Below are positions 2,727 through 31,003 of a DNA stretch of 32,308 nucleotides, one piece after another. Where the stretch lies: the sequence record NC_004087.1; one strand, given 5' to 3'. The position numbers and the translations under genes were made by a program. Below the pieces are notes generated by a model that was not told where the DNA came from, made no database searches, and saw nothing but the letters and a program-made list of their open reading frames with translations. The stretch's first letter is position 1. Every line of letters starts with the position of its first letter.

Positions 2727-3044
2727 ATGAATTATATGATTTTCAATTCATTAATTGTTCAAAAATATATTTTAAATAATGCAAAAGCAGTTGCTACAAT
2801 TAGGAAAAAAGGTTATTATAAATTATATCAAAAAATTATTTTGAAAGTTGGAGATAAAAGATTTTATGGAAAAGTTATCGCAAAAGCTCCAGTTACTGAA
2901 TATTGTCTTTCAAAATATGTGAAATTTAGCGGATTTGAAAATGTTGAGAATTGGTTAAATGAAGCTAAAAGACTTCATAATGATAAAATAGATTTTGAGA
3001 GATATGAAATTATTGTAATTTGGATAAATGATTCATTCTTCTAA
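2727..3044 (+). CDS. ASCH/PUA-like domain protein
   Basis: ILNNAKAVATIRK matches the ASCH IxxGxKxxTxR motif; SGFENVENW matches the xGFxSxEEW motif. Confidence 0.65.
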   Translation: MNYMIFNSLIVQKYILNNAKAVATIRKKGYYKLYQKIILKVGDKRFYGKVIAKAPVTEYCLSKYVKFSGFENVENWLNEAKRLHNDKIDFERYEIIVIWINDSFF

Positions 3045-3953
3045 TTCTATACTATTTTTCTTTTTATTTTGTTGTTTCTCTTTCTTTAACTCATTTGCAA
3101 TTTTATAGTTCTGAATTATTTCAGTTACTAAACTATCAAGTCCCATTTTCCTTAATTTTTCTGCATATATCGTATATTTATTTTTTATATTCCAATTATT
3201 ATATTTTAAAATCCAGGCATTCATAGTTTTTAAAATTTTTACATTTGAGAAATCATATTCAAATGGAAAATTTGTTTTATCTAAGAATTCGAAAAGTTTC
3301 TCTTCTTCTTCTTTTGTTAAAGTTCTTTCTTTTCTATCTCCTACATATCTTCTAGTTCCATCAAACCAAAAAATTTCACGATAGCTTGCTGTTTTTGTAT
3401 AAGTTGTAGTATCCATAGAGTTAGCCGTATCAAAAATTTGAAGAAAATATGGAGCAGACATACCTAGAACATGTAGTCTTTTTACATATTTTCTAATATA
3501 ATAATACCACGGAAATGTATAAATTAAAATTTTTAATTTACTAGATGCAATTATTCCGCCAAATGCAATATAATCAGTATATTGGCTATAAAAATCTATA
3601 GCTTCATCTACTTCTCTAGTTGGATAAAGATGTATAACTGGGATAATTCTTTCTATATATTCCATTTTCGTATATAGATATTCGAAATATTCAAAATTCT
3701 TTCTATCAAGAGGAGAAAAAATAGATGGAATATCAAGAGAAAAAAATGCATAAGCATTATACGTTTTGTATTTTTCTAATACATCTTTTACTGAAATTTT
3801 TAAATTGTATAACGCAATTTGATAGCCACCGCTATCGACCCAAGTTTCATTTTTCCAGGTTATCTTTTTGTTTCGTAATTGATTGATCAAAATTGGAAAA
3901 TTTATTTTAATTAATAAATCTTGTGATGAGACAATTCCAAATACTATTTTCAT
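3033..3953 (-). CDS. tgt: tRNA-guanine transglycosylase (TGT)/DpdA-like enzyme
   Basis: Motifs VDSGGYQ, LDIP, PVIH, IAFGG, HVLG and SMDTTT (nucleophile Asp position). No CxCxxC zinc site. Confidence 0.88.
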   Translation of the reverse strand: MKIVFGIVSSQDLLIKINFPILINQLRNKKITWKNETWVDSGGYQIALYNLKISVKDVLEKYKTYNAYAFFSLDIPSIFSPLDRKNFEYFEYLYTKMEYIERIIPVIHLYPTREVDEAIDFYSQYTDYIAFGGIIASSKLKILIYTFPWYYYIRKYVKRLHVLGMSAPYFLQIFDTANSMDTTTYTKTASYREIFWFDGTRRYVGDRKERTLTKEEEEKLFEFLDKTNFPFEYDFSNVKILKTMNAWILKYNNWNIKNKYTIYAEKLRKMGLDSLVTEIIQNYKIANELKKEKQQNKKKNSIELEE

Positions 3954-3961
3954 ATAGCTTT

Positions 3962-5161
3962 CTATTTTGGTATGACATTTATTTTACTTTTTCTTAATAA
4001 GTATACTATAGCTCCTATTATTGGTAATATCATAATTCTTAATATTGTATATTCTATATTTCCGGCAATTACAAATTTATAGAATATTGGATTTTGATAT
4101 CCTAGATAAAAGAATAGGAATATCTGAATTGCTAAAGATGTTAGAACTATAGAAAATAATTTTTTATCATTCATAAGTTTCAAATATGCAAATGCTACAA
4201 TTATGAAGTTCCAAAATATGAATAATAATCCGTCTAGTCCGAAAGATATGTTAAATCCTAGCAAGTTTTCTAGAACATTTGCTATTGTTTCTGTTGAGAA
4301 AATTAGCAATAAAACATTTGGATTTATTTTGCTAAATTTTTCTGGTAATACTTTATCAAAACTCATAGTTTGAATTAATCTACTTTGGATTTTATTTGCA
4401 ATTGGCATGTAACTAAAGAACCAAATTGGCATTAGTGCAAACAATATGTTTAAATTTGAATAGCTATCTAGAATTGATAATATTGCTACGACACCATAAC
4501 TTACAAAATATCCTATCATACTTGATTTTTTAATATTTTTAATTTCTCCAGCTATATAACTAATTGCATTTATGAAAATGAAAGCAGATAAATCAAATAG
4601 TAAAGCAGATAATAAAGTATTAGAAATTGTGAAAGTCTGATATTGATAATTGAAAGATTTAAAAGCTATAAATATTGCAATTATTATTTGGAATATTGCT
4701 AATATGTCTACAATTTTTGCATATATTCTCTTACTTGCTATAATTAGTAAAACAAGAGGAAATAGAGATTCGACAATTAGAAATTGTTCAAATTGATTTT
4801 GAATATTAAAGTTTAAGAGTACAAGATCTCCTAAGATTGGCTGAGATAGTACATATGTTAGCCATAATGAAATTCCAAAAATTGTGTAAAATTTTGAAGA
4901 AAATGCAGTTCTAATATAGGCGTAATCACCGCCATTTAATGGAAATTTTGTTGTTAGTTTATAGTACATTAAAAGAAGTGGAATTTCAAATACTGCTCCA
5001 ATTACAATTGCAAAAAGTAGATTTACATTTTTCATTAGACTTGAAACAAATAACGGATAACTTATTCCGCTTAAAATTCCCATATAGAGAAGATTTATTG
5101 AAAAAATATCTAAAACATTAAATGATTTAATTATTCCAGAACTTTTTCTTTCTAATTCCAT
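3962..5161 (-). CDS. APC-superfamily permease
   Basis: Many hydrophobic helices and the APC signature FPLNGGDYAYIRTAF. Confidence 0.85.
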   Translation of the reverse strand: MELERKSSGIIKSFNVLDIFSINLLYMGILSGISYPLFVSSLMKNVNLLFAIVIGAVFEIPLLLMYYKLTTKFPLNGGDYAYIRTAFSSKFYTIFGISLWLTYVLSQPILGDLVLLNFNIQNQFEQFLIVESLFPLVLLIIASKRIYAKIVDILAIFQIIIAIFIAFKSFNYQYQTFTISNTLLSALLFDLSAFIFINAISYIAGEIKNIKKSSMIGYFVSYGVVAILSILDSYSNLNILFALMPIWFFSYMPIANKIQSRLIQTMSFDKVLPEKFSKINPNVLLLIFSTETIANVLENLLGFNISFGLDGLLFIFWNFIIVAFAYLKLMNDKKLFSIVLTSLAIQIFLFFYLGYQNPIFYKFVIAGNIEYTILRIMILPIIGAIVYLLRKSKINVIPK

Positions 5162-5204
5162 AAGCTAGCTAAATTGCTAAGACATAAATAAAGTCACACA
5201 ACTA

Positions 5205-5222
5205 ATACATAATATAATGTAT
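5205..5222. promoter_or_regulatory. Palindromic operator ATACAT-N6-ATGTAT upstream of the permease
   Basis: ATACATAATATAATGTAT; related copies at 11074, 11798, 13857, 20272 and 24617. Confidence 0.6.
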
Positions 5223-5397
5223 ATAGTGTGTTCTTTTTATAAGTAAAACTTGATTAAATTCTTATTTATGACAACAAAATTTTTTTATAAAAATCTCATA
5301 GCAAGTAAATCAAACCATATACATAATATATATTATATAGTATATTGGTTTAAGAATTAGTTGAGAAAAAAAAGAAAATATCTTTAATTAAATTTTT

Positions 5398-5592: not shown

Positions 5593-5952
5593 TTATGACA
5601 TTTTTATATCTTTTTTTGTCTTTAGCATATACTTATATACATTTTTTATATCGCTAATAGACTTTGGAACTAATTCAATTCTAATGTCAGAATGTGAAGG
5701 CATATGTTTGTGAACTCTAGAATAATCTAATTTTTTATTCGTGAAAACTAAAATATGATAATGTAGACCATTTGAATTTTTTGTAGTTTCTTTTATAGAA
5801 AATACATGTGAATTTTTATCATGATTATAAATATAACTACGAAATTTTCTAAATATTTTTTCAGTATCTCCATACTTATAATTAGTTGTAATAGTAATGA
5901 AATAAGTGTAAATATAAGAAAAATGAAAATTTAAAACTTTTTTCAAATCCAC
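5593..5952 (-). CDS. rep: HUH-superfamily Rep nicking protein
   Basis: HUH motif GLHYHILV and catalytic YxxK motif (YMLK). Confidence 0.93.
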   Translation of the reverse strand: MDLKKVLNFHFSYIYTYFITITTNYKYGDTEKIFRKFRSYIYNHDKNSHVFSIKETTKNSNGLHYHILVFTNKKLDYSRVHKHMPSHSDIRIELVPKSISDIKNVYKYMLKTKKDIKMS

Positions 5953-6053
5953 GATATTACGTGTGAAAATGACGTTTAAAAACTTATGTTGTTGGAAAAA
6001 CGAAAGGTTTAAAAATGCTTAATCAAAAATTTTTATAAACGAGGTGACTAGAG

Positions 6054-6320
6054 ATTCAGAGTAGAAAATATATATGCTTAAGAGTGCCAAGTCAGTTAAA
6101 AGAAAAATTCTATGAAAAAAGAGATGAAATAAAGAGAGAATTAGATCAGATTTTAGAAGGTAAAAGAAAGTTAGAAATTAAAGAAATTAGTGATTTATAT
6201 GATGAACAAGTTTTTTTTACTGTAGATATGCTATATTATGAAAAACTTCAAGAACTAGCAAAAAAATACAAAAAATCGTTATCAAAAATAATAAGATCTG
6301 TATTCTTTAATCTAAGTTAA
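6054..6320 (+). CDS. Tandem ribbon-helix-helix protein; probable non-AUG (ATT) start at 6054, track start GTG 6084
   Basis: Open in-frame upstream extension IQSRKYICLRVP supplies an RHH beta-strand. Second RHH is QVFFTVDMLYYEKLQELAKKYKKSLSKIIR. GAGGTGA SD at 6041-6047. Confidence 0.7.
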   Translation: MQSRKYICLRVPSQLKEKFYEKRDEIKRELDQILEGKRKLEIKEISDLYDEQVFFTVDMLYYEKLQELAKKYKKSLSKIIRSVFFNLS

Positions 6321-6402
6321 ATCCTTTTTTTCTTTTTCTTTTTTATCTCTCATATTATGTATTGGAAATTCTATATTTCTCTTCATATTACGAAATTAAA
6401 AA

Positions 6403-6419
6403 GATATAAAAATGTCATA
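6403..6419 (+). promoter_or_regulatory. Representative rudiviral TATA+GTC promoter GATATAAAAATGTCATA
   Basis: TGTCAT(A/G) core found at 2083, 2448, 2712, 6413, 8841, 11853, 12893, 15345 and 24673 (+), and at 3971, 5267, 5594, 10970, 26988, 28361 and 30221 (-), mostly 15-45 bp before a start codon. A GTC element after TATA is established for rudiviruses. Confidence 0.8.
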
Positions 6420-6447
6420 ATTAAAAGATATTTTTAGGGGAAGAAAC

Positions 6448-6843
6448 ATGGCATCCCTTAAAGAAATAATAGATGAGTTAGGAAAACAAGCTAAAGAACA
6501 AAACAAAATAGCTTCTAGAATTCTAAAGATAAAAGGAATAAAAAGAATAGTAGTACAGTTGAATGCAGTACCACAGGATGGAAAGATAAGGTATTCGCTA
6601 ACAATACACAGTCAAAACAACTTCAGGAAACAAATTGGAATAACGCCACAAGATGCAGAAGATTTAAAGTTAATTGCCGAATTTCTAGAGAAATATAGCG
6701 ATTTCCTAAATGAATATGTAAAGTTTACTCCTAGAAATAATAACGCAATACAAGAAGAAGAAATAGATATGGAACAACAAGAAGAAAAAGAAGAGAAACC
6801 AAGAGAAAAAGGCAAAAAGAAATCAGTTGAAGAGGAGTTTTAA
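6448..6843 (+). CDS. DNA-binding (SSB-like) protein ORF131, SIRV2 Gp17 family
   Basis: Recognised rudiviral sequence with a charged disordered C-tail ending EEEF; first gene of the ATPase-nuclease operon. Confidence 0.8.
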   Translation: MASLKEIIDELGKQAKEQNKIASRILKIKGIKRIVVQLNAVPQDGKIRYSLTIHSQNNFRKQIGITPQDAEDLKLIAEFLEKYSDFLNEYVKFTPRNNNAIQEEEIDMEQQEEKEEKPREKGKKKSVEEEF

Positions 6844-6868
6844 AACGTCATAGCCTAATTTTTTTTTC

Positions 6869-8191
6869 ATGAGTGGAAACCAGCAAACGAACTCTCAATT
6901 GTTTGAAAAGTTAAAAAGTCATTCTTTTTTTTATAATCCAAGAGATAATGAAAGAATTTTAAGTCTAATTCTTGGAGAAAAACAAGTTGAAGAAAATAAG
7001 AAAATTGAGATTTTAAAAGCTTATAAAAGAGGAATAGATTCACAATATTTTAGTGCTAATTTGCCATATTATAACGAAATAAAATTTATTTCTAAGATAA
7101 CTGGATTTAAGGTAAAAGATGATCTAGTTATTGCAAAATTTCAAAATGGATTTACTGGTGATTTTGATCCTCATGAAATTGCAGATAATCCAGATGATTT
7201 TTACAACCTAATTTCTTCATATATGTTTGTAAAAATTAAAAAAGGATCAGAAAATTGGTTTATTGATGAAATATTTTCTATTGAACCTCCTAATAATTTT
7301 GAAATTGCAAAAGAAATTCTAGAAGAAGCTGATAAAGAACATTTAACTTATGCCGTTTTACTTCAAGCTTTTGGCTATGATTCGCAAAAAATGGATTCAG
7401 ATGATATTTTTCTAACTTTACCGCGATTATTTCCATTATTTAAATCTCCAATTACTAAGAGACAAATTAATACTATTGAAATTTCAAACCGCGGAACTGG
7501 AAAAACTACAACATTTATGATTTTACAAGAAGTTTTCAATTTCAGATATTACACTGAACCGCCGACTTATGCAAATTTAATATATGATGCTAGAAATAAT
7601 ATGTATGGTTCAGTATTTTTATCGAATGGATTAATTTTTGACGAAATACAAACTTGGAAAGATGGATATGCAGTTAAAGAACTAAATTCTATAAATTCCA
7701 CTCTTTCAACTGGAATTGAAAATTGTATATGGACTAGAGGCGCCGGTACAGAAAGTAAATCTGCTACAATTCAAAAATGTATTCCAATAATTTATGCTGG
7801 AAATCCATTTTCACTAACTCTAGATAAATATCAAACTCCAGATATAGAATCATATTTACAACAATATGAAATTTTTACGCCTGCAATTCTAGATAGAATT
7901 CATATTATTCAATTAGCAATTAAGAAAACTTATGATAAAATAATAAATGCTAGAGTTCTATATCCTTCAATTCTAAGAGCATTAGTAGAATTAATTCAAG
8001 AAAAAATTAACAGAACTACAAATTATGCAGATTGTGGGAATTTGGAAAGTAGGAGAAAAGAACAATCTATAGATATTCAAATAGTTCTACAAGCACTTGA
8101 TATAGATCTGCAAATTGGAAAAGTTTCAAATGAAGAAGTATGTAATAAAATTGTGAATTTAATGAGATTTAGTAATTTAGGAGGATGGTAA
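6869..8191 (+). CDS. AAA+ ATPase/helicase-like protein (BrxL/MCM-related)
   Basis: Walker A RGTGKTT, Walker B LIFDE, sensor IIYAGN, arginine finger ILDRIH. Confidence 0.88.
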
Positions 8192-8808
8192 TCATGAATT
8201 ATGAAGATCATATAAAAGAAAGCTTTAAAGTTAAATATCCTGCAGATACGATTTTTCCATCTGAAGTTGGTATTTGTTATAGAAAAAGTTATCTTGCTAG
8301 AAATATTGAATTTGAAAGAGGAATAAATGAAATTTATTTAGATTTAGGAGAACAATATCATGAGAGAATTGAACAATATTTTAAAGAAAAATTGAATTGT
8401 CAAACTGAAGTTGAAATTAAAGATGAAATTGAAGGAATAAAAATTAGCGGTAGAATTGATATAGTTTGTAATAATGACTTATTGGAAATTAAAACAATTA
8501 GTTATAATTATTTTCAAGTAAAAGAATATCACTTATATCAAGTTGCATTATATTATCATATTCTTAAAAAGCAAAATTATCAAATTAATAATGTATATAT
8601 TGTATATTTAAATAGGAATACTAGAGAAGTTAAGCAATTTAAAATTGATGAAAAAGTTTTAGAAAATTATTATCAAAAAGTTATTGAATGGATAAAGAAA
8701 TTTAAAGAATATCTAAAAGAAACAGATTATAAAAAAGTTCCAGGAGTTAACAATTATATTTGTAAATCTTGCGAATTCAAACAAAAATGCATTATATCAC
8801 TTTTTTAA
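8185..8808 (+). CDS. cas4: Cas4-like Fe-S exonuclease
   Basis: PD-(D/E)xK motif GRIDIV...LLEIKT, QVALY, one N-terminal Cys plus C-terminal CxxCx5C. Confidence 0.92.
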
Positions 8809-8871
8809 TGAAAAAATAGAAGAGTAAAAAGATATAAAAATGTCATAATATAAAATGTAAAAATAGAGAAC

Positions 8872-9117
8872 ATGAGTTCCCAAGAAGAAATCATAAAAAC
8901 TTTAAATAAAAAAGATATAAAAGATATAATAACGAAAAATATTTCTTTTTTAGTTGAACCTCAAATCTTGTTTTATGCAAAAAAGAGAAATAGAATTGTA
9001 GGATATCTAGAGGTTAACGGTAGACATTATCGTTTTGAGCTAATTTTTTCAAAAGATAATAGCGTAAGTATAACAATTGGAGAACTGGTAGTATTTGGGA
9101 GCAGTGATTTAAAATGA
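8872..9117 (+). CDS. Hypothetical 81-aa protein
   Basis: GATATAAAAATGTCATA promoter at 8831-8847; intact ORF. Confidence 0.8.
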   Translation: MSSQEEIIKTLNKKDIKDIITKNISFLVEPQILFYAKKRNRIVGYLEVNGRHYRFELIFSKDNSVSITIGELVVFGSSDLK

Positions 9118-9293
9118 TGAAGATTATCACTTTTAAAATTCCAGAAGAAACATTATTGTTACTAGATGCTTACGCAATAAAACACAATATGAATAGGTCA
9201 GAAGTTATAAGGCTAGCAATAGAAAAGTTAGTAGTAGATGAAATGAAAAATGAACCAGTACCAAGAGCCAGAGTTGAGAAAATAAAATTCTGA
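9114..9293 (+). CDS. 59-aa CopG-like RHH transcription factor; missing from ORF track
   Basis: Manual translation MMKIITFKIPEETLLLLDAYAIKHNMNRSEVIRLAIEKLVVDEMKNEPVPRARVEKIKF with RHH signature NRSEVIRLAI. ATGA overlap with the upstream stop. Confidence 0.93.
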   Translation: MMKIITFKIPEETLLLLDAYAIKHNMNRSEVIRLAIEKLVVDEMKNEPVPRARVEKIKF

Positions 9294-9335
9294 TTAAATT
9301 ATACTAAAATAAAATGAAATAAAGAGCTGAGTCAA

Positions 9336-9611
9336 ATGACTGATTATAAAAATGGAATAAAGAAATTATTACAAAAATGTTTTTCTGATAAATCTATTGA
9401 TGTTATTTTTATGTCATGTAATAATTTAAGTCCTCATAAAGATTATATGATTATTGATCCTGAAACAAAATATTATATAGGATATATTTTAACTAATGGT
9501 ATAAAAATACCATTTATTGCTGAAGTTTGGCATAATAATACAACACGTATTTATTTAGATCCTAGAAAGAATTTCTATTTAGCACTTTTTATAGGTGATT
9601 TAAATGTCTGA
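9336..9611 (+). CDS. Hypothetical 91-aa protein
   Basis: Intact ORF overlapping the start of the next gene. Confidence 0.75.
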   Translation: MTDYKNGIKKLLQKCFSDKSIDVIFMSCNNLSPHKDYMIIDPETKYYIGYILTNGIKIPFIAEVWHNNTTRIYLDPRKNFYLALFIGDLNV

Positions 9612-10143
9612 TGAAATAAATAAAACACAATTAAAAAACATTATAAATGCTATTTTAGAGTACAAAAGAGTATTAGTATATAGAAATGAAATTAATGGAG
9701 ATATAGACAATAGTTATGTATTATTTTATAATGAGATCGATAGTAATTTTGATATCTTAACGATTCCATTTGTAATAGAAAATTTAAGAGAAGAAAAAGA
9801 ATTCCTAAAATTTTTATATGAAAGTGAACTATTTGATATAGATAATTTATCGAAACTAATTGTTGACTTCATAGATTATAAACATAGACCTTGCCTATTG
9901 AAAGGTCTAGTCTATGTTGAACTATTAGATCTAATAAAACAATATAATTATCAAATCACTGAAAATAATATTAATTTTAACAAAAATAGATTTACGGGAG
10001 AAATTAGATATATTATATCGATAGACTCAAATAAAACTGCAGAAATTATTAAAAAAATTGAATATTGCAATTTCTGTTTATATGACAGAGATATAAATGT
10101 AGGTATTCAAAAATGCGTAACTTATAAGTTAAAATATTCATAA
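9604..10143 (+). CDS. Hypothetical 179-aa protein
   Basis: GGTGA SD; long ORF; A/T tracts after stop. Confidence 0.8.
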   Translation: MSDEINKTQLKNIINAILEYKRVLVYRNEINGDIDNSYVLFYNEIDSNFDILTIPFVIENLREEKEFLKFLYESELFDIDNLSKLIVDFIDYKHRPCLLKGLVYVELLDLIKQYNYQITENNINFNKNRFTGEIRYIISIDSNKTAEIIKKIEYCNFCLYDRDINVGIQKCVTYKLKYS

Positions 10144-10160
10144 AAAAATTTTATTTTTTT
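10143..10160. terminator. Bidirectional oligo-T terminator between convergent ORF179 and dut
   Basis: AAAAAAATTTTATTTTTT gives T-tracts on both strands. Confidence 0.55.
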
Positions 10161-10635
10161 AATCTTCTTTTGCTAATGTGACGCCTTTCTGTTTCTGATA
10201 TTTTCCGTTATAAGGCTTTTCTACCGGCGTTAAAGTTCTAGCAAAAATTAGATGTAAAAATCTTTCTCCTGATTTTAATTTGACAGGAATTGAAGAACCA
10301 ACTAATTCTATAGTAAGTTGACCTTCAAATCCCGCATCTACAATTGTCGGCGGAATTAATAATCCTTTTCTAGCAAATGTACTTCTCAAATTACAAAATG
10401 CTATAATATCATTTGATAATTTTATATATTCTTTTGTTGTTAAAAGTACATGTTCATTTGGATAAATTATAAATTCATCTCCTACTTCTTTTTCCATATT
10501 TTCTTTTATCCTAACTATTTCGTTACCAATTTTCAAATCGACACCATTTTCTCTTATTGTATCCTCACTTAATGGATTTATAACTAATTTTTTAGAATTT
10601 ATATATGTTTTTATATCTCTATCTGAAAGAATCAT
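10159..10635 (-). CDS. dut: dUTPase (dCTP deaminase-like fold)
   Basis: Motifs [17 protein letters not shown] and [14 protein letters not shown]. Confidence 0.92.
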
Positions 10636-10647
10636 CTTTTCTCAGTT

Positions 10648-10953
10648 TTAGTTATTACTTTCTGACATATTTATATCTCCACAGATTGCCGAAATTTTAA
10701 ACATATTTTTATCATATCTCCAATTTACTTTTATATAATTTGGATATTTGAAAGTACGAACTAAATATTTTAGCATAGACATCCCGGCTTTTTCATATTC
10801 TTTCTTTTTCATATTTATTTTTATTTGCATTAATATTATTTCTTCATCTTCAAAAACATTAAAGAAATAAATATTGTCGGAATATCTACTTTCTAGCCAA
10901 TTTCGGAATTGAATTATATATTTTCTACATTCATTCTTTATATCAATTTCCAT
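10648..10953 (-). CDS. Hypothetical 101-aa protein
   Basis: TGTCATA promoter at 10970-10976 (minus); intact ORF. Confidence 0.8.
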   Translation of the reverse strand: MEIDIKNECRKYIIQFRNWLESRYSDNIYFFNVFEDEEIILMQIKINMKKKEYEKAGMSMLKYLVRTFKYPNYIKVNWRYDKNMFKISAICGDINMSESNN

Positions 10954-11073
10954 ATTTTAGTTAAGCAGATATGACAATTTAATAGTTTTGTGTATTACAT
11001 TATATAGTATAATATATAGTATATAATTTCCGGGATTATTTTCATAGTAATTTTTACAAATCTTAGTAGTCAT

Positions 11074-11091
11074 ATACATTATATTATGTAT
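11074..11091. promoter_or_regulatory. Palindromic operator ATACATTATATTATGTAT upstream of the capsid gene
   Basis: Identical 18-mer at 20272-20289. Confidence 0.65.
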
Positions 11092-11141
11092 AAGACGTGA
11101 AAATTTATTAATTTAAAGAATAAAATTGATATTGACCAAAA

Positions 11142-11546
11142 ATGGCAAAAGGTCACACAAAAAGATCATATAGCCAAAGGTACGCAAAATGGCAAGCCAA
11201 ATTTAATGCGTTTAGTAACCCAACAGTAGCATCTACTATATTGTCAAATGTAGCTCCTGTTGCCCAACAGAATTTCCAGACTAATGTCCCAACATTTACC
11301 GCGGTTAACGAAAATGTTAGTGCAGTTCTTTCACAATATGGAATAACTGGGCCTAACAGAGCTATATATCAAGGTTTTGGTTTGAAGATTGCTAGAGCAC
11401 TTAATAGGATTGGGAGCGGGCCAGCTTTAGTAAATATGATAAACGGTTTGAAAAGTTATTATATTTCAGCTTTTAACGCTAATCCTCAAGTATTAGATGC
11501 TGTAGTAAATATAATAACTGGAAGCCCGACTGGATACGTAAGTTAA
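11142..11546 (+). CDS. Rudivirus major capsid protein (134 aa)
   Basis: Recognised sequence MAKGHTKRSYSQRYAKWQAKFNAFSNPTVASTILSNV. Confidence 0.98.
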   Translation: MAKGHTKRSYSQRYAKWQAKFNAFSNPTVASTILSNVAPVAQQNFQTNVPTFTAVNENVSAVLSQYGITGPNRAIYQGFGLKIARALNRIGSGPALVNMINGLKSYYISAFNANPQVLDAVVNIITGSPTGYVS

Positions 11547-11576
11547 AATATTTAAGCTATTTTTTTCTTTTTTTCT

Positions 11577-11744
11577 TTATTCTTCTTCAGTCTTTATTTC
11601 TATATATTCCCCAGTTCTCAAACTTATCCTCCTACAATTAGATAATTTTAAATTTGTATTATGCTTTCTTAAATGAGTTATCATACTTTTCCTTTTTATA
11701 TAAATTTCTCCACAAATTGGACATTCATATCCTAAGAGTGCCAT
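11577..11744 (-). CDS. 55-aa C2H2 zinc-finger protein (start moved from 11789)
   Basis: CPICGEIYIKRKSMITHLRKH. A TTTAAAAATGTCAAA promoter-like motif lies at ~11761-11775, inside the longer ORF call. Confidence 0.8.
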   Translation of the reverse strand: MALLGYECPICGEIYIKRKSMITHLRKHNTNLKLSNCRRISLRTGEYIEIKTEEE

Positions 11745-11876
11745 AAGGAGAAATTTGGATTTGACATTTTTAAATGCTATTAAATCCAATCAACCATATA
11801 CATTATATAATATATATGAATTATAGGTTAAGTTGTTAGTCAGCTTTATTTTTGTCATAATTTTTATTTTTATCTC

Positions 11877-12884
11877 ATGAAAACTGCAATTTTAACTATG
11901 AATTATTCTTCTATATCTAATGTTTCTGAAGATATTGCAGAAGTTTTGAGAGAAAATGGAGAAATCGTAACAATAACAAAAAATCCATTTTATATTCCAA
12001 AAGCTGAAAAATTAATAGTTTTCATTCCATTCCATCCGCCATCTCTAAATCCATATCTTTATGCTTTTTATCAATTTAATGGAAAGAAATTATTTTATAC
12101 TACTTGTGATGGAATTCCAAATATTGAAATTGTAAATAAGTATTTATTACAAGATGTTAAATTTATACCAAATTCAAAATTTTCAGCTATGAATTTACAA
12201 GAAGTAGGTCTACAAACAGATTTGCCAGTTTTCCATGGAATTAATTTTAAAATTGTAGAAAATGCCGAAAAATTAGTTCCACAATTAAAACAAAAGTTAG
12301 ATAAAGATTTTCCTAACACGATAAAATTTGGAATTGTGAGTGGATTAACAAAAAGAAAAAATATGGATTTAATGTTACAAGTTTTTAATGAACTAAATAC
12401 AAAATATCCAGATATTGCTAAAAAAATTCACTTTTTCGTAATTTCTCATAAACAATTTACGCAAAATGAAGTTCCCGCAAATGTACATTTTGTAGCAGAG
12501 TTTGGATTTAATAGTAGAGAATATATATTTGGATTTTATGGAGCTATGGATTATATTATTGTTCCAAGTGGAACAGAAGGATTTGGAATGCCAGTTCTAG
12601 AAAGTATGGCTATGGGAACTCCAGTTATCCATCAACTTATGCCCCCGTTTGATGAATTTACAAGCTGGCAGTGGAATTTATTAATTAAATCTTCAAAAGT
12701 TGAAGAATATTATGATAAAGAGCATGGACAAAAGTGGAAAATTCATAAATTTGAAATTGAAGATATGATAAATGCAATTATATTAGCTTCTGAACTTCAA
12801 GATAGAGAAGAAAGAAGTACTAAATTAAAAGAATTAGCAAAAAGATATGATATAAGAAATTTATATACTAGATTTTTAGAATGA
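11877..12884 (+). CDS. GT-B (GT4-like) glycosyltransferase
   Basis: EGFGMPVLESMAMG (Ex7E) motif. Confidence 0.93.
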   Translation: MKTAILTMNYSSISNVSEDIAEVLRENGEIVTITKNPFYIPKAEKLIVFIPFHPPSLNPYLYAFYQFNGKKLFYTTCDGIPNIEIVNKYLLQDVKFIPNSKFSAMNLQEVGLQTDLPVFHGINFKIVENAEKLVPQLKQKLDKDFPNTIKFGIVSGLTKRKNMDLMLQVFNELNTKYPDIAKKIHFFVISHKQFTQNEVPANVHFVAEFGFNSREYIFGFYGAMDYIIVPSGTEGFGMPVLESMAMGTPVIHQLMPPFDEFTSWQWNLLIKSSKVEEYYDKEHGQKWKIHKFEIEDMINAIILASELQDREERSTKLKELAKRYDIRNLYTRFLE

Positions 12885-12926
12885 TATAAATTTGTCATAA
12901 TACATAATATATAATAATGATAGAGA

Positions 12927-13055
12927 ATGAAAGTAAAAATAATATGTGAAAAATTAACTACATTTCATATAAATTCTGAAGATGAAGAATTAGTAAATAG
13001 AATAATAAAAATGTGTAATGATTATAATTTAAATTACAAAATTGAACTTGAATAA
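12927..13055 (+). CDS. 42-aa small protein; missing from ORF track
   Basis: MKVKIICEKLTTFHINSEDEELVNRIIKMCNDYNLNYKIELE. GATATAAATTTGTCATA promoter at 12883-12899; T-tract after stop. Confidence 0.6.
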   Translation: MKVKIICEKLTTFHINSEDEELVNRIIKMCNDYNLNYKIELE

Positions 13056-13060
13056 TTTTT

Positions 13061-13255
13061 TTACCATATTCCCCATTCTTTACTATCTATAAGTTTCATT
13101 TTTCCATTTTCTATCATATTTGCATAATCTTTTAATATTTTTGGCAATACTTTTTTTAATTCTTCTTCTGTTGGCTTATTTGGAACTTGATCAATTAAAA
13201 TATAAATCTTAATATGTAATTCTTTATTTTTTTCATCATAATAATAAGTTATCAT
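13061..13255 (-). CDS. Hypothetical 64-aa protein
   Basis: ATGA coupling to the upstream gene; GGA SD. Confidence 0.8.
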   Translation of the reverse strand: MITYYYDEKNKELHIKIYILIDQVPNKPTEEELKKVLPKILKDYANMIENGKMKLIDSKEWGIW

Positions 13256-13485
13256 TTTTGATCCAACTTCCTTTTTATTTCTTCAACTTGTCTTGATAAT
13301 TCATCTTGTTTTATTTTTAATTCTTCAATTTCTGTCTTTAGATTTGATAATTCTGAATTTACTATCTCTTTTACTGCATCTTTTAATGCCTGTTTAATTT
13401 TTAGATATAATTGAATAATTGCAAATAATGTAGTTGTAGTAGTGGAAATTATAGTGAGGACTAATGTAGTCTCACTCATCTTCAT
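13252..13485 (-). CDS. N-terminal hydrophobic helix plus coiled-coil protein (~77 aa; track start 13506)
   Basis: GAGGAGG SD before MKMSET; heptad pattern ELSNLKTEIEELKIKQDELSRQVEEI. Confidence 0.75.
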   Translation of the reverse strand: MKMSETTLVLTIISTTTTTLFAIIQLYLKIKQALKDAVKEIVNSELSNLKTEIEELKIKQDELSRQVEEIKRKLDQK

Positions 13486-13804
13486 TTTCCTCCTCAGATA
13501 ATTCAAAATTTGCAGTACTATTAATTTGTTTCGCGTAAGGTTGAGGATATACTACGCGAAAATCATCTATAAAAATCTGCTTAGTTTGTTGATCTTGAAT
13601 TATAGAAAATTGAAAATAGAAAGTAAAACCTGGAATATAAAGGTCAACAATTAATGGATAATCGATAGTTTTCATAACAATTATTGAATTTGGTAAAAAA
13701 CGTGATAAACCATAAATTTGACCTCTCTGTTCTAATTCTTTTATTTTATCAATTGCAATTCTAACAACTCCAAAAATATTTTGAAAAGGATCTTCAATTC
13801 TCAT
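13472..13804 (-). CDS. Conserved rudiviral 110-aa protein
   Basis: Intact ORF preceded by the 29-bp late element at 13848-13876. Confidence 0.8.
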   Translation of the reverse strand: MRIEDPFQNIFGVVRIAIDKIKELEQRGQIYGLSRFLPNSIIVMKTIDYPLIVDLYIPGFTFYFQFSIIQDQQTKQIFIDDFRVVYPQPYAKQINSTANFELSEEENEDE

Positions 13805-13893
13805 ATGATATCTTTTATTTCAAGCCGTTAAAAAATATACAAGTAGCATAACTCATATATATTATATAATGTATATAGTGTCTGAATTTTGTG

Positions 13894-15282
13894 TCATCTA
13901 ACTGCAATATTTTGAAAGTTCTTATAGTAGAAAATTGGCTTATATTGTTTCGTTTTTGCAGATTTTTGAGCTAATTTTATCTGGTTTTCAATTTTAGCTT
14001 GTCCTTGTAATTGTTCTCCTAATTGTTGTGCATATTGCAAATCTTGATCTGTTAATCCGTAAAATTTCCACTTAGTTTTCCAATAATTCAAAAAGTCTTG
14101 ATATGATAATGTTCTTTTTCCAGATGTATAACTGTAATTTTGTTGATAAGGATATCTTGCAATTTCTATAGTAGCACTTGCTACCATTTTCGCGTACCAA
14201 ATGTTTGAATATTTCTTATTTACAATTTTCTGAATTTGCAAAAATTGTTGATAGCTAACTGCATAGTTTTCAATTTCTGAACTATAAGCTATATTAATTC
14301 CACCAGGAGATGGATCATATAAATGCATTTTAAATAGATTTCCAAATATTGAAATTACGGTTTTATCTGCAGATAAAATAGCTATTAAATCATCTTGAGT
14401 AACATTTTCTGGATTAAATTCAGGCATTAGTACCGCAAAATCTAAAGGAGTATAATCCAAAATCATTCCAAAAACATCTGCAAAATATTGTAAAATCATA
14501 CCATTTTGTAATTGAATTCCATTTTGAGTTTCAGGAGCTAAAACACATCTATCTAGCCAACCGACATCTAAAGCAAATCCGTTATTTATTATGCTATTTA
14601 AGTCTGGAATAAATGCAATTATGAATTTAGCAAAATCTGGAAGTTGATTAAAGTTAATATTTAAAGCATTTAATAAATCTATAATTCCGGTATCTGCAAT
14701 ATTATTATACATATAGTTATCTACATTTGGAATATTTGTAATTCCAGTTCCTAAAGTTGTAACATTTACACTTACATTTGTAGTAGTTAAACTAGAAAAG
14801 TATTGTTCAATTTTCTTACAAGATTGGTTTTGATATTCTGTAGCTAATGCCGGCTGATATACAGATAAATCAAAATAAGTTTCATCAAAAACTGCCGGTT
14901 GATATAAAATATTGCATAATTGTACATAATTATCATATAAACTAGTATAATTATTTAATAAACTTATTCCATTAGAAATTCCAAAATTTGCAGATTGACC
15001 TAAATTAAGAAATGTTTGAGAATTAAAATTTGGATTAAATACTGAAATTGCTAAATTGTTTAATGCAGAAAGTAAAGAAGAAATAATTGAAGCGTATGCA
15101 ATTCCATAATTTGTATTTATGCCTAGAGGAATTTGAATATTTTCTAATGGAGTTGGTAAAACTGATTCAACTCCAGCGTCAAACATTACAGAAAATGCAG
15201 GGAAAGATTTTCTATTCAATATTTTATTATATAAGTGATATTTCATACTTGCTATATTTCTCTGTCCTTTTCTCTTGCCCAT
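13894..15282 (-). CDS. Minor virion structural protein (ORF486/488 family); likely start MGKRKG at 15282
   Basis: Long ORF. The track N-terminal extension overlaps the divergent GNAT gene and its promoter, so it is likely non-coding. Confidence 0.75.
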   Translation of the reverse strand: MGKRKGQRNIASMKYHLYNKILNRKSFPAFSVMFDAGVESVLPTPLENIQIPLGINTNYGIAYASIISSLLSALNNLAISVFNPNFNSQTFLNLGQSANFGISNGISLLNNYTSLYDNYVQLCNILYQPAVFDETYFDLSVYQPALATEYQNQSCKKIEQYFSSLTTTNVSVNVTTLGTGITNIPNVDNYMYNNIADTGIIDLLNALNINFNQLPDFAKFIIAFIPDLNSIINNGFALDVGWLDRCVLAPETQNGIQLQNGMILQYFADVFGMILDYTPLDFAVLMPEFNPENVTQDDLIAILSADKTVISIFGNLFKMHLYDPSPGGINIAYSSEIENYAVSYQQFLQIQKIVNKKYSNIWYAKMVASATIEIARYPYQQNYSYTSGKRTLSYQDFLNYWKTKWKFYGLTDQDLQYAQQLGEQLQGQAKIENQIKLAQKSAKTKQYKPIFYYKNFQNIAVR

Positions 15283-15368
15283 AGCTATCAATTTATATAT
15301 CTCAAGTAGAAAAATAAACTTACAAATTGCATAATGTATATAAATGTCATACATTATTGATTTAATAA

Positions 15369-15833
15369 ATGAATCAAAAATATGAAGTTGAAGAAATAAA
15401 AAATAAAGAATTAGTAAAATTAGCAAGAATGTTAATTGATTACTATCATATTCAAGGAATGGTAAAGGGAGGTGGAGCTGGTAGAAATTCTAGATATTTT
15501 ATGTATTTAGAAAAAGAAGATGACAAGAAATATATAGTAGCAGTTGCCTGGCTTCATGATAATACTCCATTTCGTTTTATTGCACAACAATATAATATTC
15601 CAAACGATAGAAGTTATTTTATTAGAAGAGTAACTAAAACTGCTCCTGGAGATCATTTAGTGAATTTTCTAAATGATTTAGCTGAGAAACTGAAGAAAGA
15701 TGGTTTTGAAGTTCTATGGACACTTGGTTTTCCAGACCATAGTAATGCTTTATATAAAAAAGCCGGGTTCAAATTAGTAGGTCAAACTAGTAGGACAAAA
15801 CATGAAGTTTATGTAAAATATTTGAATAAGTGA
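15369..15833 (+). CDS. GNAT-family acetyltransferase
   Basis: Motif SNALYKKAGFKLVG; beta-strand YFIRRVT. Confidence 0.8.
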   Translation: MNQKYEVEEIKNKELVKLARMLIDYYHIQGMVKGGGAGRNSRYFMYLEKEDDKKYIVAVAWLHDNTPFRFIAQQYNIPNDRSYFIRRVTKTAPGDHLVNFLNDLAEKLKKDGFEVLWTLGFPDHSNALYKKAGFKLVGQTSRTKHEVYVKYLNK

Positions 15834-15839
15834 CAGAAA

Positions 15840-16205
15840 ATGAACATTAGACAGTCAGGTAAATATTATGAATATAAAACTTTAGAAATTCTTGAAAAAA
15901 ATGGCTTTAAAGCATTAAGAATTCCAGTTTCTGGAACTGGAAAACAGGCACTTCCAGATCTTATAGCGACAAAAAATAATACAATTTATCCAATTGAAGT
16001 TAAATCAACTTCAAAAGATGTAGTAACTGTTAGAAATTTCCAAATTGAAAAACTGTTCAAATTTTGTGAAATTTTTAATTTTTGTGAATGTCATCCACTT
16101 GTGACTGTGTACTATAAAAAATATAAAATTGTCATAGTCTATGAATTATCTCAAGATGTCAGAACAAAAGAAAAAATCAAATTTAAATACGGAATTAACA
16201 GCTAA
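15840..16205 (+). CDS. hjc: Archaeal Holliday junction resolvase (Hjc/Hjr)
   Basis: GKYYEYK...SG...PDLIA...IEVKS motif set. Confidence 0.97.
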   Translation: MNIRQSGKYYEYKTLEILEKNGFKALRIPVSGTGKQALPDLIATKNNTIYPIEVKSTSKDVVTVRNFQIEKLFKFCEIFNFCECHPLVTVYYKKYKIVIVYELSQDVRTKEKIKFKYGINS

Positions 16206-26664: not shown

Positions 26665-26952
26665 TTATCTTTTCTCACGAAATAGATCAATTTCTAGAAT
26701 ATGTATAAAACCTTTTTCTTTAAAATAATAAATAATAAGTTTAACAAGTGTATTTGATAATTCATAATATACAAACTCATCTGATAATACCCAAGGATCT
26801 TTATCTACAAAAGATAGATTTGGTCTTCCTACTAATTCGTTATACTCATTTTCTGAAACTATTAAAGGTCTCTTAAAGGCTAAAGTTAACTCATTAAGAT
26901 TTTTTTCTTTAAAAAACATGTCTATAATTCGTTTAACTTTTTTCAAATTCAT
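26665..26952 (-). CDS. acrID1: AcrID1-family protein (start MNLKK at 26952)
   Basis: MNLKKVKRIIDMFFKE...ILEIDLFR. The track GTG at 26964 is part of the GGTGA SD. Confidence 0.75.
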   Translation of the reverse strand: MNLKKVKRIIDMFFKEKNLNELTLAFKRPLIVSENEYNELVGRPNLSFVDKDPWVLSDEFVYYELSNTLVKLIIYYFKEKGFIHILEIDLFREKR

Positions 26953-30835: not shown

Positions 30836-31003
30836 TTAACAACTCTCCAAATATCTGCGTACCTTTCTCTCTGAAACGCCTAAAGCGTTTGCTATCTGTT
30901 GAACTGTGTAACCCATCTTAGCCAACTCGTGAGCCACGCTAACTAAGTCATCTTCTGACTCTACATAATATCTTACGCCTTGAACTTGTATTTCCTTTTT
31001 CAT
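30836..31003 (-). CDS. 55-aa HTH protein (ITR copy 2)
   Basis: Mirror of 1306..1473. Confidence 0.92.
   Translation of the reverse strand: MKKEIQVQGVRYYVESEDDLVSVAHELAKMGYTVQQIANALGVSERKVRRYLESC

Follow-up and report, generated by a model that had tools for sequence, protein, structure and literature searches.

The 32,308-nucleotide window analyzed here (NC_004087.1) is the complete genome of the rudivirus SIRV1 (100% match), and its gene for ORF306 (SIRV1gp06; ORF, open reading frame) encodes an enzyme of the TGT superfamily in which the catalytic residues are conserved. Profile, fold and residue comparisons give good support to ORF306 as a virus-type DNA-guanine transglycosylase, belonging to the same remote-homology family as the DpdA (DpdA1) of phage 9g, and we consider it probable, at roughly 60%, that the enzyme places a 7-deazaguanine of host origin in DNA. 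The identification of SIRV1 ORF306 as a likely DNA modifier is not new, as it was published in 2019: the protein (NP_666594) stands as a singleton in the DpdA column of Supplementary Data 1 of that study, and the same list of singleton DpdAs includes SIRV2 to SIRV11 except SIRV6, SRV, and STSV1 and STSV2 (Hutinet, 2019; PMC6884629). Because NP_666594 is in that list, the main inference of a preliminary description of this DNA had already been proposed in print. That description also joined ORF306 to an adjacent permease and an ASCH protein in a three-gene base-modification module; with the ORF306 assignment public since 2019 and the link to the transporter weak, its finding adds little.

If ORF306 acts on DNA as we propose, D181 would, after replication, attack C1' of a deoxyguanosine in viral DNA, with D40 serving as the general acid/base, and guanine would leave. 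A host-made 7-deazaguanine, preQ0 being the likeliest and its precursor CDG a possible alternative, would then be inserted, with D74 and H108 reading the edge of the base. The expected outcome would be modification of a small fraction of G, and the role would be accessory, in anti-defence or self-marking, rather than a step in replication or assembly.

Fold, active site and family of ORF306

In the AlphaFold2 (AF2) model of ORF306 (pLDDT 91.5), a TGT-type (beta/alpha)8 barrel is followed by a long C-terminal helix, with approximately residues 256–306 forming a helical, Lys/Glu-rich tail. A Foldseek search of the PDB with this model gave the archaeal TGT (arcTGT, 1iq8) as the top match (E 4e-8), with TGTs of bacteria and humans next, and the 157 matches at E<=1e-3 were mostly TGTs; the same search of BFVD returned phage DpdA-type proteins. 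Searches of Pfam, NCBIfam and the PDB with the single sequence gave nothing useful. By contrast, a profile built from 25 sequences of the ORF306 family matched arcTGT (1iq8, E 1e-4) and Salmonella DpdA (7ui4, E 2e-3) in the PDB, and in that alignment D40, D74, G132, HVLG and D181 fall on catalytic elements.

Of the catalytic motifs named in the preliminary description, DSGGYQ, LD, the GG of FGG, HVLG, and MD correspond to invariant columns of the family. D40-S-G-G-Y-Q45, L73-D74, G132, H161-V-L-G164, and D181 are invariant both in the 25 sequences and in 42 homologues, and D40, G42, D74, G132, H161, G164, and D181 remain so in 76 relatives down to approximately 17% identity. Since the catalytic residues are invariant even among rudiviruses that have diverged to approximately 40% identity, the active site appears to be under purifying selection. 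In arcTGT, the counterparts of D40, D74, and D181 are Asp95, Asp130, and Asp249. The active site of Salmonella DpdA consists of Asp95, Asp130, His181, and Asp256 (PMC10164549), and ORF306 H108 aligns with this His181 (the His of ‘GVAHGW’ in 7ui4), at a position that is Gln in tRNA TGTs (the Gln of ‘IQGSTY’ in 1iq8).

ORF306 contains no cysteine at all, so that a CxCxxC...H zinc site is impossible, and its 306 amino acids end in the helix, with no PUA, C1/C2 or other C-terminal tRNA-binding domain; the earlier observation that both the zinc site and the PUA extension are missing therefore stands. Among 1.84 billion representative proteins searched, 1059 relatives were identified, each of them a stand-alone protein of 280–400 aa; the distant ones retain CxCPxC...HN, and the Sulfolobales/rudiviral clade has lost the zinc site. 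This loss is no oddity of SIRV1, because the functional 9g DpdA also lacks CxCxxC. Comparison of the ORF306 family with 9g DpdA by hhalign gave a probability of 93.4% (E 2.5e-7, 204 columns), and the alignment spans the zinc-less C-terminus (‘FLDKTNFPFE...MNAW’ vs. ‘YLEESGFTYE...YNLW’). In addition, phrog_887 includes 9g DpdA (2e-98), ORF306 (4e-72), STSV2_15 (6e-56), and the host homologue (3e-45). The His at the base-reading position, the profile match to 9g DpdA and the shared PHROG family all favor the previous placement of ORF306 in the TGT superfamily as a DpdA (DNA) type rather than an arcTGT.

A close parallel among known systems is DpdA1 of Enterobacteria phage 9g (gp03, YP_009032326). 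Both proteins are stand-alone TGT barrels of approximately 300 aa that keep DSG, His, GG, H-x-x-G, and the nucleophile Asp, and both are zinc-less C-terminally, lack CxCxxC, go unmatched by Pfam TGT, and belong to phrog_887. They differ in that their identity is only about 20%, their hosts are Archaea and Bacteria, respectively, and SIRV1 encodes DpdA alone, with none of the co-encoded FolE, QueD, QueE, and QueC that are typical of, although not universal among, phage DpdAs. The 9g enzyme is reported to insert preQ0 into phage 9g DNA (PMC10516641). The closest characterized relative, which supports the DNA reading, is STSV2_15 (41% identical to ORF306 over 282 aa), from a virus whose virion DNA was reported to contain dCDG (PMC10516641); the DpdAs of the bicaudaviruses STSV1 and STSV2 belong to the same zinc-less Sulfolobales clade, although the STSV gene adjoins an ArcS-core (DUF5591) gene and no permease, whereas SIRV1 has the permease and no ArcS-core. 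The Salmonella Montevideo DpdA (7ui4) shares the active site of three Asp and one His with ORF306, which is 130 aa shorter; bacterial DpdA has a CXCX2CX22H zinc site and large insertions and needs the DpdB ATPase (PMC10164549), none of which applies to ORF306. Lastly, arcTGT (1iq8) ranks first in the PDB by fold as well as by profile and shares the catalytic Asp residues, but it is a 582-aa protein with a zinc site, C1/C2/PUA domains, and Gln as base reader, whereas ORF306 has none of these and carries His instead. The DNA reading is further supported by the position of ORF306 near an AcrID1-family anti-CRISPR gene in a near-terminal accessory region, and by cellular relatives that adjoin genes for HerA- and NurA-like DNA-processing machinery.

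Several points weigh against DNA as the target. The relative in which 7-deazaguanine was measured is STSV2, which is not a rudivirus. ORF306 has no match to Pfam TGT (PF01702) at E<=0.1, although this family matches 60 of the 76 distant relatives and also misses the validated 9g DpdA, whose identity to ORF306, as noted, is low. PADLOC likewise found neither DpdA nor any other defence match for ORF306, the neighboring ORF399 and ORF105, or the host TGT-like and DUF5591 genes. Bacterial TGT also lacks a PUA domain, so the absence of PUA by itself does not exclude a tRNA target, and arcTGT deprived of its PUA domain still makes preQ0-tRNA. In STSV2, modification was found as dCDG at 0.04% of G, and dCDG was not the predicted base (Hutinet, 2023; PMC10516641); this low level and unpredicted base cast doubt on function and substrate alike in this clade. 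Finally, loss of the gene has no phenotype in the laboratory, so that any benefit must be conditional.

This last point comes from SIRV2, in which the homologues are gp12 (ORF102, the ASCH protein), gp13 (ORF310, DpdA), and gp14 (ORF399, the permease). The mutant SIRV2MII has spontaneously lost positions 5678–8557 (gp10–gp14), and its virion yield is like that of the wild type in S. islandicus LAL14/1 with the CRISPR arrays deleted (Mayo-Munoz, 2018; PMC6315595). Because SIRV2MII grows like the wild type, all three genes are accessory; the result rules out a role for them in replication or assembly and fits a conditional one, such as anti-defence or host range. Should SIRV DNA carry 7-deazaguanine, rudiviruses would offer a tractable system in which to study how archaeal viruses hypermodify their DNA, as SIRV2 is genetically editable and a strain without the DpdA homologue is already available. 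Such a finding would also shed light on STSV2, for which it is puzzling where the dCDG comes from and why so little of it is present.

Host substrate supply and cellular relatives

As described earlier for the queC/D/E and folE genes, the RefSeq table and a motif scan revealed neither these nor an ArcS-core signature anywhere in the window; the signature PCx3KPYx2Sx2H is absent from all six frames. There are also no tRNA genes in the window, and its RefSeq table lists neither DpdB (a ParB-like ATPase) nor dpdC-K. Because SIRV1 lacks the deazaguanine synthesis genes, the virus depends on an outside source for any substrate. The host S. islandicus encodes FolE, QueD, QueE, Gat-QueC, and arcTGT, and is reported to make preQ0, and viruses could use such host intermediates (PMC6884629). 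Of the earlier suggestion that SIRV1 relies on host or imported preQ0, the external supply therefore holds, whereas import is not needed, because the host makes preQ0.

The nearest cellular homologues of ORF306 are approximately 40% identical to it and fall within a Sulfolobales clade that lacks the zinc site entirely. These homologues reside in the chromosomes of S. islandicus, S. solfataricus, S. shibatae, S. tengchongensis, and Acidianus, and from their accession numbers we take REY15A and LAL14/1 to be among the S. islandicus strains. In the maximum-likelihood phylogeny, the rudiviral genes form a single clade (100/100) nested within Sulfolobales sequences, and the STSV2 gene groups with chromosomal Saccharolobus/Sulfolobus genes (98/90), apart from the rudiviral clade.

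We read the surrounding loci in S. shibatae, S. tengchongensis, Acidianus sp. HS-5, and CP152368 (a close relative of S. shibatae). In all four genomes, the TGT-like gene heads a tight same-strand cluster, in which it is followed by genes for a DUF5591 protein, a HerA-like ATPase, a P-loop protein of approximately 1010 aa, a coiled-coil protein of approximately 220 aa, and a NurA-like nuclease (in CP152368, positions 8001–15888 of locus L003). The DUF5591 protein, corresponding to the ArcS catalytic core, keeps PCx3KPYx2Sx2H. Relatives at 17–20% identity have the same gene set in other orders. Clusters of this kind occur in the chromosomes of SIRV hosts, S. islandicus among them, and are widespread in archaeal metagenomes. 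Among 46 metagenomic loci, each 8 kb or longer, retrieved in a scan with a subgroup profile, DUF5591 and HerA were each present in 38, NurA in 32, and the large P-loop protein (1000–1400 aa) in 40; at least four of the five families occur together in 36 loci, on one strand in 32, with a median span of 8.9 kb, and the commonest order is NurA, HerA, large protein, DUF5591, TGT-like (23 loci). Our search of the literature, to which access was limited, found no description of this TGT-like/DUF5591/HerA/NurA association. The linkage to genes for DNA end processing supports DNA as the substrate of the ORF306 enzyme family, and the gene content suggests that the host cluster may be an archaeal Dpd-like system for DNA modification and restriction, or for repair. 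We also considered the TGT-like and DUF5591 proteins as a split ArcS acting on tRNA, which is unlikely: the three catalytic Asp are kept in the TGT-like half, Sulfolobus uses Gat-QueC for G+, and HerA and NurA genes accompany the pair in many gene orders.

It is conceivable, if rather unlikely in our estimate, that the rudiviral DpdA is the captured modification enzyme of this five-gene archaeal system, with which the virus applies the 7-deazaguanine ‘self’ label of its host while the permease tops up the pool of deazapurine or its precursor. Such viral self-labelling would protect the progeny whatever host had made them. The growth of SIRV2MII on LAL14/1 is no test of this idea, because its hosts carry the cluster and could modify the virus themselves. 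The cluster suggests that archaeal chromosomes have a deazaguanine DNA system of their own, and this would make plain what the viral gene is for; the cluster is a more valuable lead than the three-gene module and deserves a follow-up of its own.

The S. tengchongensis genome (CP146016.1) carries the pair of TGT-like and DUF5591 genes (positions 8001–9444 of locus L008) together with the HerA/NurA cluster. This organism is the host of STSV2 and was stated to encode no proteins of the Q/G+ pathways (Hutinet, 2023; PMC10516641), and its cluster may bear on the unexplained dCDG in STSV2 DNA. In addition, four metagenomic loci (L070, L145, L151, and L152) have a gene for a QueT-type queuosine-precursor transporter at most a few kb away from a distant TGT-like/HerA cluster; in L070, where this gene occupies positions 1728–2213, there are two further TGT-like paralogues of 571 and 395 aa.

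Neighboring genes and alternative explanations

The genes and the candidate promoter element considered here are as follows.

ORF306 (SIRV1gp06), 3033–3953, minus strand: zinc-less, PUA-less DpdA/TGT-superfamily enzyme; RefSeq product ‘queuine tRNA-ribosyltransferase’
ORF399 (SIRV1gp07), 3962–5161, minus strand: probable permease of the amino-acid/polyamine/organocation (APC) superfamily with approximately 12 transmembrane segments; RefSeq product ‘aminoacid permease’
ORF105 (SIRV1gp05), 2727–3044, plus strand: small ASCH-fold (PUA-like) protein; RefSeq product hypothetical
Candidate TATA-like box TTTATTTA, 5185..5192, minus strand: 24–31 nt upstream of the ORF399 ATG, read from the sequence

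ORF399 lies directly upstream of ORF306 on the same strand, with 8 bp (3954–3961) between its stop and the ORF306 start, and ORF105 and ORF306 are convergent, with a 12-bp overlap; the coordinates thus confirm the gene positions, the short gap to the permease, and the overlap of the ASCH gene with the 3' end of ORF306 as first described. Chance ORFs can be dismissed, because 306 and 399 codons stay open at 25% GC (75% A+T) and the proteins are 60–92% identical across rudiviruses. The 8-bp gap leaves no room for a separate intergenic promoter, and ORF399 and ORF306 are probably co-transcribed in SIRV-type rudiviruses. Tentatively, the TATA-like box could drive a leaderless ORF399–ORF306 transcript, although such boxes are common at 75% A+T, and an AT-rich box inside ORF399 near its 3' end is a possible alternative promoter.

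ORF399 shows 11 clear hydrophobic segments and a weaker twelfth in a Kyte-Doolittle plot and belongs to phrog_8289 (E 1e-197). Its match to Pfam AA_permease_2 (PF13520; E 1e-4, 21.8 bits) is under the 27-bit cut-off, and the same family matches eight of 11 ORF399 relatives; NCBIfam gave only weak matches to FrlA and to amino-acid and ethanolamine permeases. Searched against the PDB, the ORF399 family profile found GkApcT (6f34, E 5e-7), followed by CAT4, xCT, AdiC, and LAT2. GkApcT (6f34, 5oqt), of the cationic amino-acid transporter branch, is the best structural relative of the profile (query positions 22–365), although the score is low, ORF399 has 399 aa vs. 461 aa, and the G-T-G of the first transmembrane segment (TM1) is not conserved. 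No match to NCS1, NCS2, AzgA, YhhQ, or QueT was found in Pfam, NCBIfam, PHROG, or the PDB. The preliminary description had thought of a nucleobase or preQ0 carrier, and this idea is not borne out by the matches, which are to the amino-acid/polyamine/organocation branch; judged by its family, the substrate of ORF399 is more likely to be an amino acid or amine.

The genes for the permease and DpdA are same-strand neighbors, 8–12 bp apart, in all Icerudivirus and Usarudivirus genomes or contigs with both genes in view (approximately 40 loci, which are close relatives sharing synteny). In SRV, they are adjacent but convergent, and in SBRV1 they lie 4.6 kb apart on opposite strands. The permease occurs without DpdA in ARV2 and SSRV1, and DpdA without the permease in STSV1, STSV2, and STSV4. 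In SIRV7, the DpdA gene (NC_034619.1, 28933–29871) has an in-frame stop at codon 38 (NET*IDSGGYQ) beside an intact permease, and only a 215-aa C-terminal remnant is listed in RefSeq; the stop represents a natural knockout or, alternatively, a sequencing error in a record labeled ‘partial genome.’ Each gene is thus found without the other, a pattern that covers part of what the preliminary description had itself named as refuting its module, and ORF399 works independently of DpdA in other rudiviruses.

A scan of genome contigs with the permease profile detected no cellular Sulfolobales homologue, only two weak matches in metagenome-assembled genomes, and contaminant contigs. The latter, from Streptomyces gamaensis (NZ_JBHSPB010000050.1) and Planomonospora alba (NZ_BAAAUT010000071.1), carry a SIRV3-like rudiviral permease–DpdA pair with 92 and 85% protein identity to SIRV1, respectively. 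The presence of a rudiviral pair in actinomycete draft assemblies is almost certainly contamination, which also accounts for the NCBI label ‘MULTISPECIES ... [Bacteria]’ on the SIRV3-type protein. In ARV2 and SSRV1, a conserved 207-aa protein (4764–5387 of the locus; phrog_17844), which has no Pfam match, is encoded 10 bp downstream of the permease. We considered this gene as a hidden TGT-like enzyme and rejected it, given an hhalign probability of 0.2% and the lack of a Pfam match.

For ORF105, the AF2 model (pLDDT 94.4) matched YqfB (9kyf, TM-score 0.66–0.70), PH0355, PF0455, and AF2351 in Foldseek (overall TM-scores 0.53–0.70, probabilities 0.95–1.0). No Pfam family, ASCH included, matched at E<=0.1, and the PDB gave no sequence match; of the earlier ASCH call, the fold is thus upheld, whereas a match at the sequence level is missing. 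The YqfB-type ASCH ac4C amidohydrolases (9kyf) share this fold with ORF105 at a length of approximately 100 aa. T24, R26, and E79 of ORF105 are invariant and have counterparts in Thr24, Arg26, and Glu74 of YqfB, but the position of the essential catalytic Lys21 of YqfB (PMC6972931) is Ala in ORF105 (A19-K20-A21-V-A-T24-I-R26) and Ala, Leu, or Val in its family, and the neighboring K20 is variable. ORF105 likewise lacks the ASCH octapeptide GxKxxExR or GxKxx[T/S]xR with the catalytic Lys. All 30 homologues start at the equivalent of M4 (MIFNS...), which suggests that the true start is probably M4 at 2736 rather than 2727. In the phage collection, ORF105 is present in SIRV1, SIRV1-XX, SIRV2, and SSV6 only, with a faint match in ATSV, and is absent from SIRV3–11. 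SIRV1 and SIRV2 are the only cases among the approximately 40 DpdA-bearing loci, and the metagenomic homologues reside in other mobile elements without TGT genes. ORF105 belongs to the mobile accessory genes and is no partner of DpdA.

The three-gene module, in which ORF399 would import preQ0 or another 7-deazapurine, ORF306 would insert it, and ORF105 would read or process the modified base, appears unlikely to us. Its support includes the constant adjacency of permease and DpdA in the SIRV-type loci, and in SRV in convergent form, but the SIRV adjacency is largely inherited synteny rather than independent evidence, and the solitary genes of ARV2, SSRV1, and the STSVs, the separated genes of SBRV1, and the nonsense DpdA of SIRV7 beside its intact permease all speak for separability. 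A parallel exists in the phages CDKM15, eHP-6, and phiLM21, in which, as in SIRV1, a singleton DpdA has an adjacent transporter gene and no synthesis genes; there the transporter is YhhQ (PMC6884629), a dedicated preQ0 carrier family, whereas ORF399 probably belongs to the unrelated APC superfamily. The QueT genes near distant TGT-like genes in the four metagenomic loci also favor a module, as does the alignment, although weak, of the carboxylate-binding TM1 motif G-[ST]-G of APC carriers for amino acids with S-Y-P in the viral permease, since the substrate then need not be an alpha-amino acid. Against these stand a host that makes preQ0 itself, the amino-acid/polyamine affiliation of the ORF399 family, and an ORF105 that accompanies DpdA only in SIRV1 and SIRV2, recurs in SSV6 and in TGT-less elements, and has lost the ASCH catalytic Lys. 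We therefore do not retain the three genes as a unit, and that the permease feeds the ORF306 reaction is possible but not favored.

The remaining alternatives concern ORF306 itself. It might be a minimal arcTGT-like enzyme that inserts preQ0 or a different base into RNA of the host or the virus, for example at G15 of tRNA, and so retunes translation during infection, as would agree with the tRNA TGTs and arcTGT being its best PDB matches by profile and fold, with its RefSeq and UniRef names (queuine or archaeosine tRNA-ribosyltransferase), and with an active site that serves guanine exchange in whichever polymer. We consider this quite improbable, because the host already has an arcTGT and the virus no tRNA genes, because ORF306 lacks the C1/C2/PUA domains of arcTGT and the zinc subdomain common to all tRNA TGTs and has the His of DpdA where tRNA TGTs have Gln, and because it groups with the DNA-modifying 9g DpdA by both profile and PHROG; moreover, its STSV2 relative is associated with DNA modification (PMC10516641), and its cellular relatives are linked to HerA/NurA rather than to tRNA genes. 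Still less probable, at long odds, is that ORF306 is decaying or repurposed and performs no base exchange, being a DNA-binding remnant or acting against a host modification. The gene is dispensable in the laboratory and has a nonsense allele in SIRV7, the protein has lost the zinc site that distant relatives retain, and a measured phenotype or modification has been reported for no rudivirus; but the catalytic residues are all invariant across rudiviruses, the active 9g DpdA is zinc-less as well, and the gene is kept in four rudivirus genera. DNA modification by ORF306 with a host-derived 7-deazaguanine remains our preferred reading.

Genomic setting

The three genes sit in the left near-terminal accessory region of the genome, with an AcrID1-family gene on one side and genes for the SvtR repressor and Rep on the other. 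The window contains two AcrID1-family (DUF1374) anti-CRISPR genes (2118–2426 and 26665–26952), of which the first lies approximately 300 bp upstream of ORF105; given this proximity, the DpdA region falls within a near-terminal anti-defence/accessory zone, which in SIRV2 can disappear spontaneously as one block (gp10–gp14). Some RefSeq product names elsewhere in the window resemble automatic mislabels for a rudivirus, namely ‘terminase small subunit’ for ORF56a/c (1306–1473 and 30836–31003). The name ‘protease’ for ORF440 (6869–8191) also resembles a mislabel, as ORF440 in the SRV record is a putative Holliday junction helicase.

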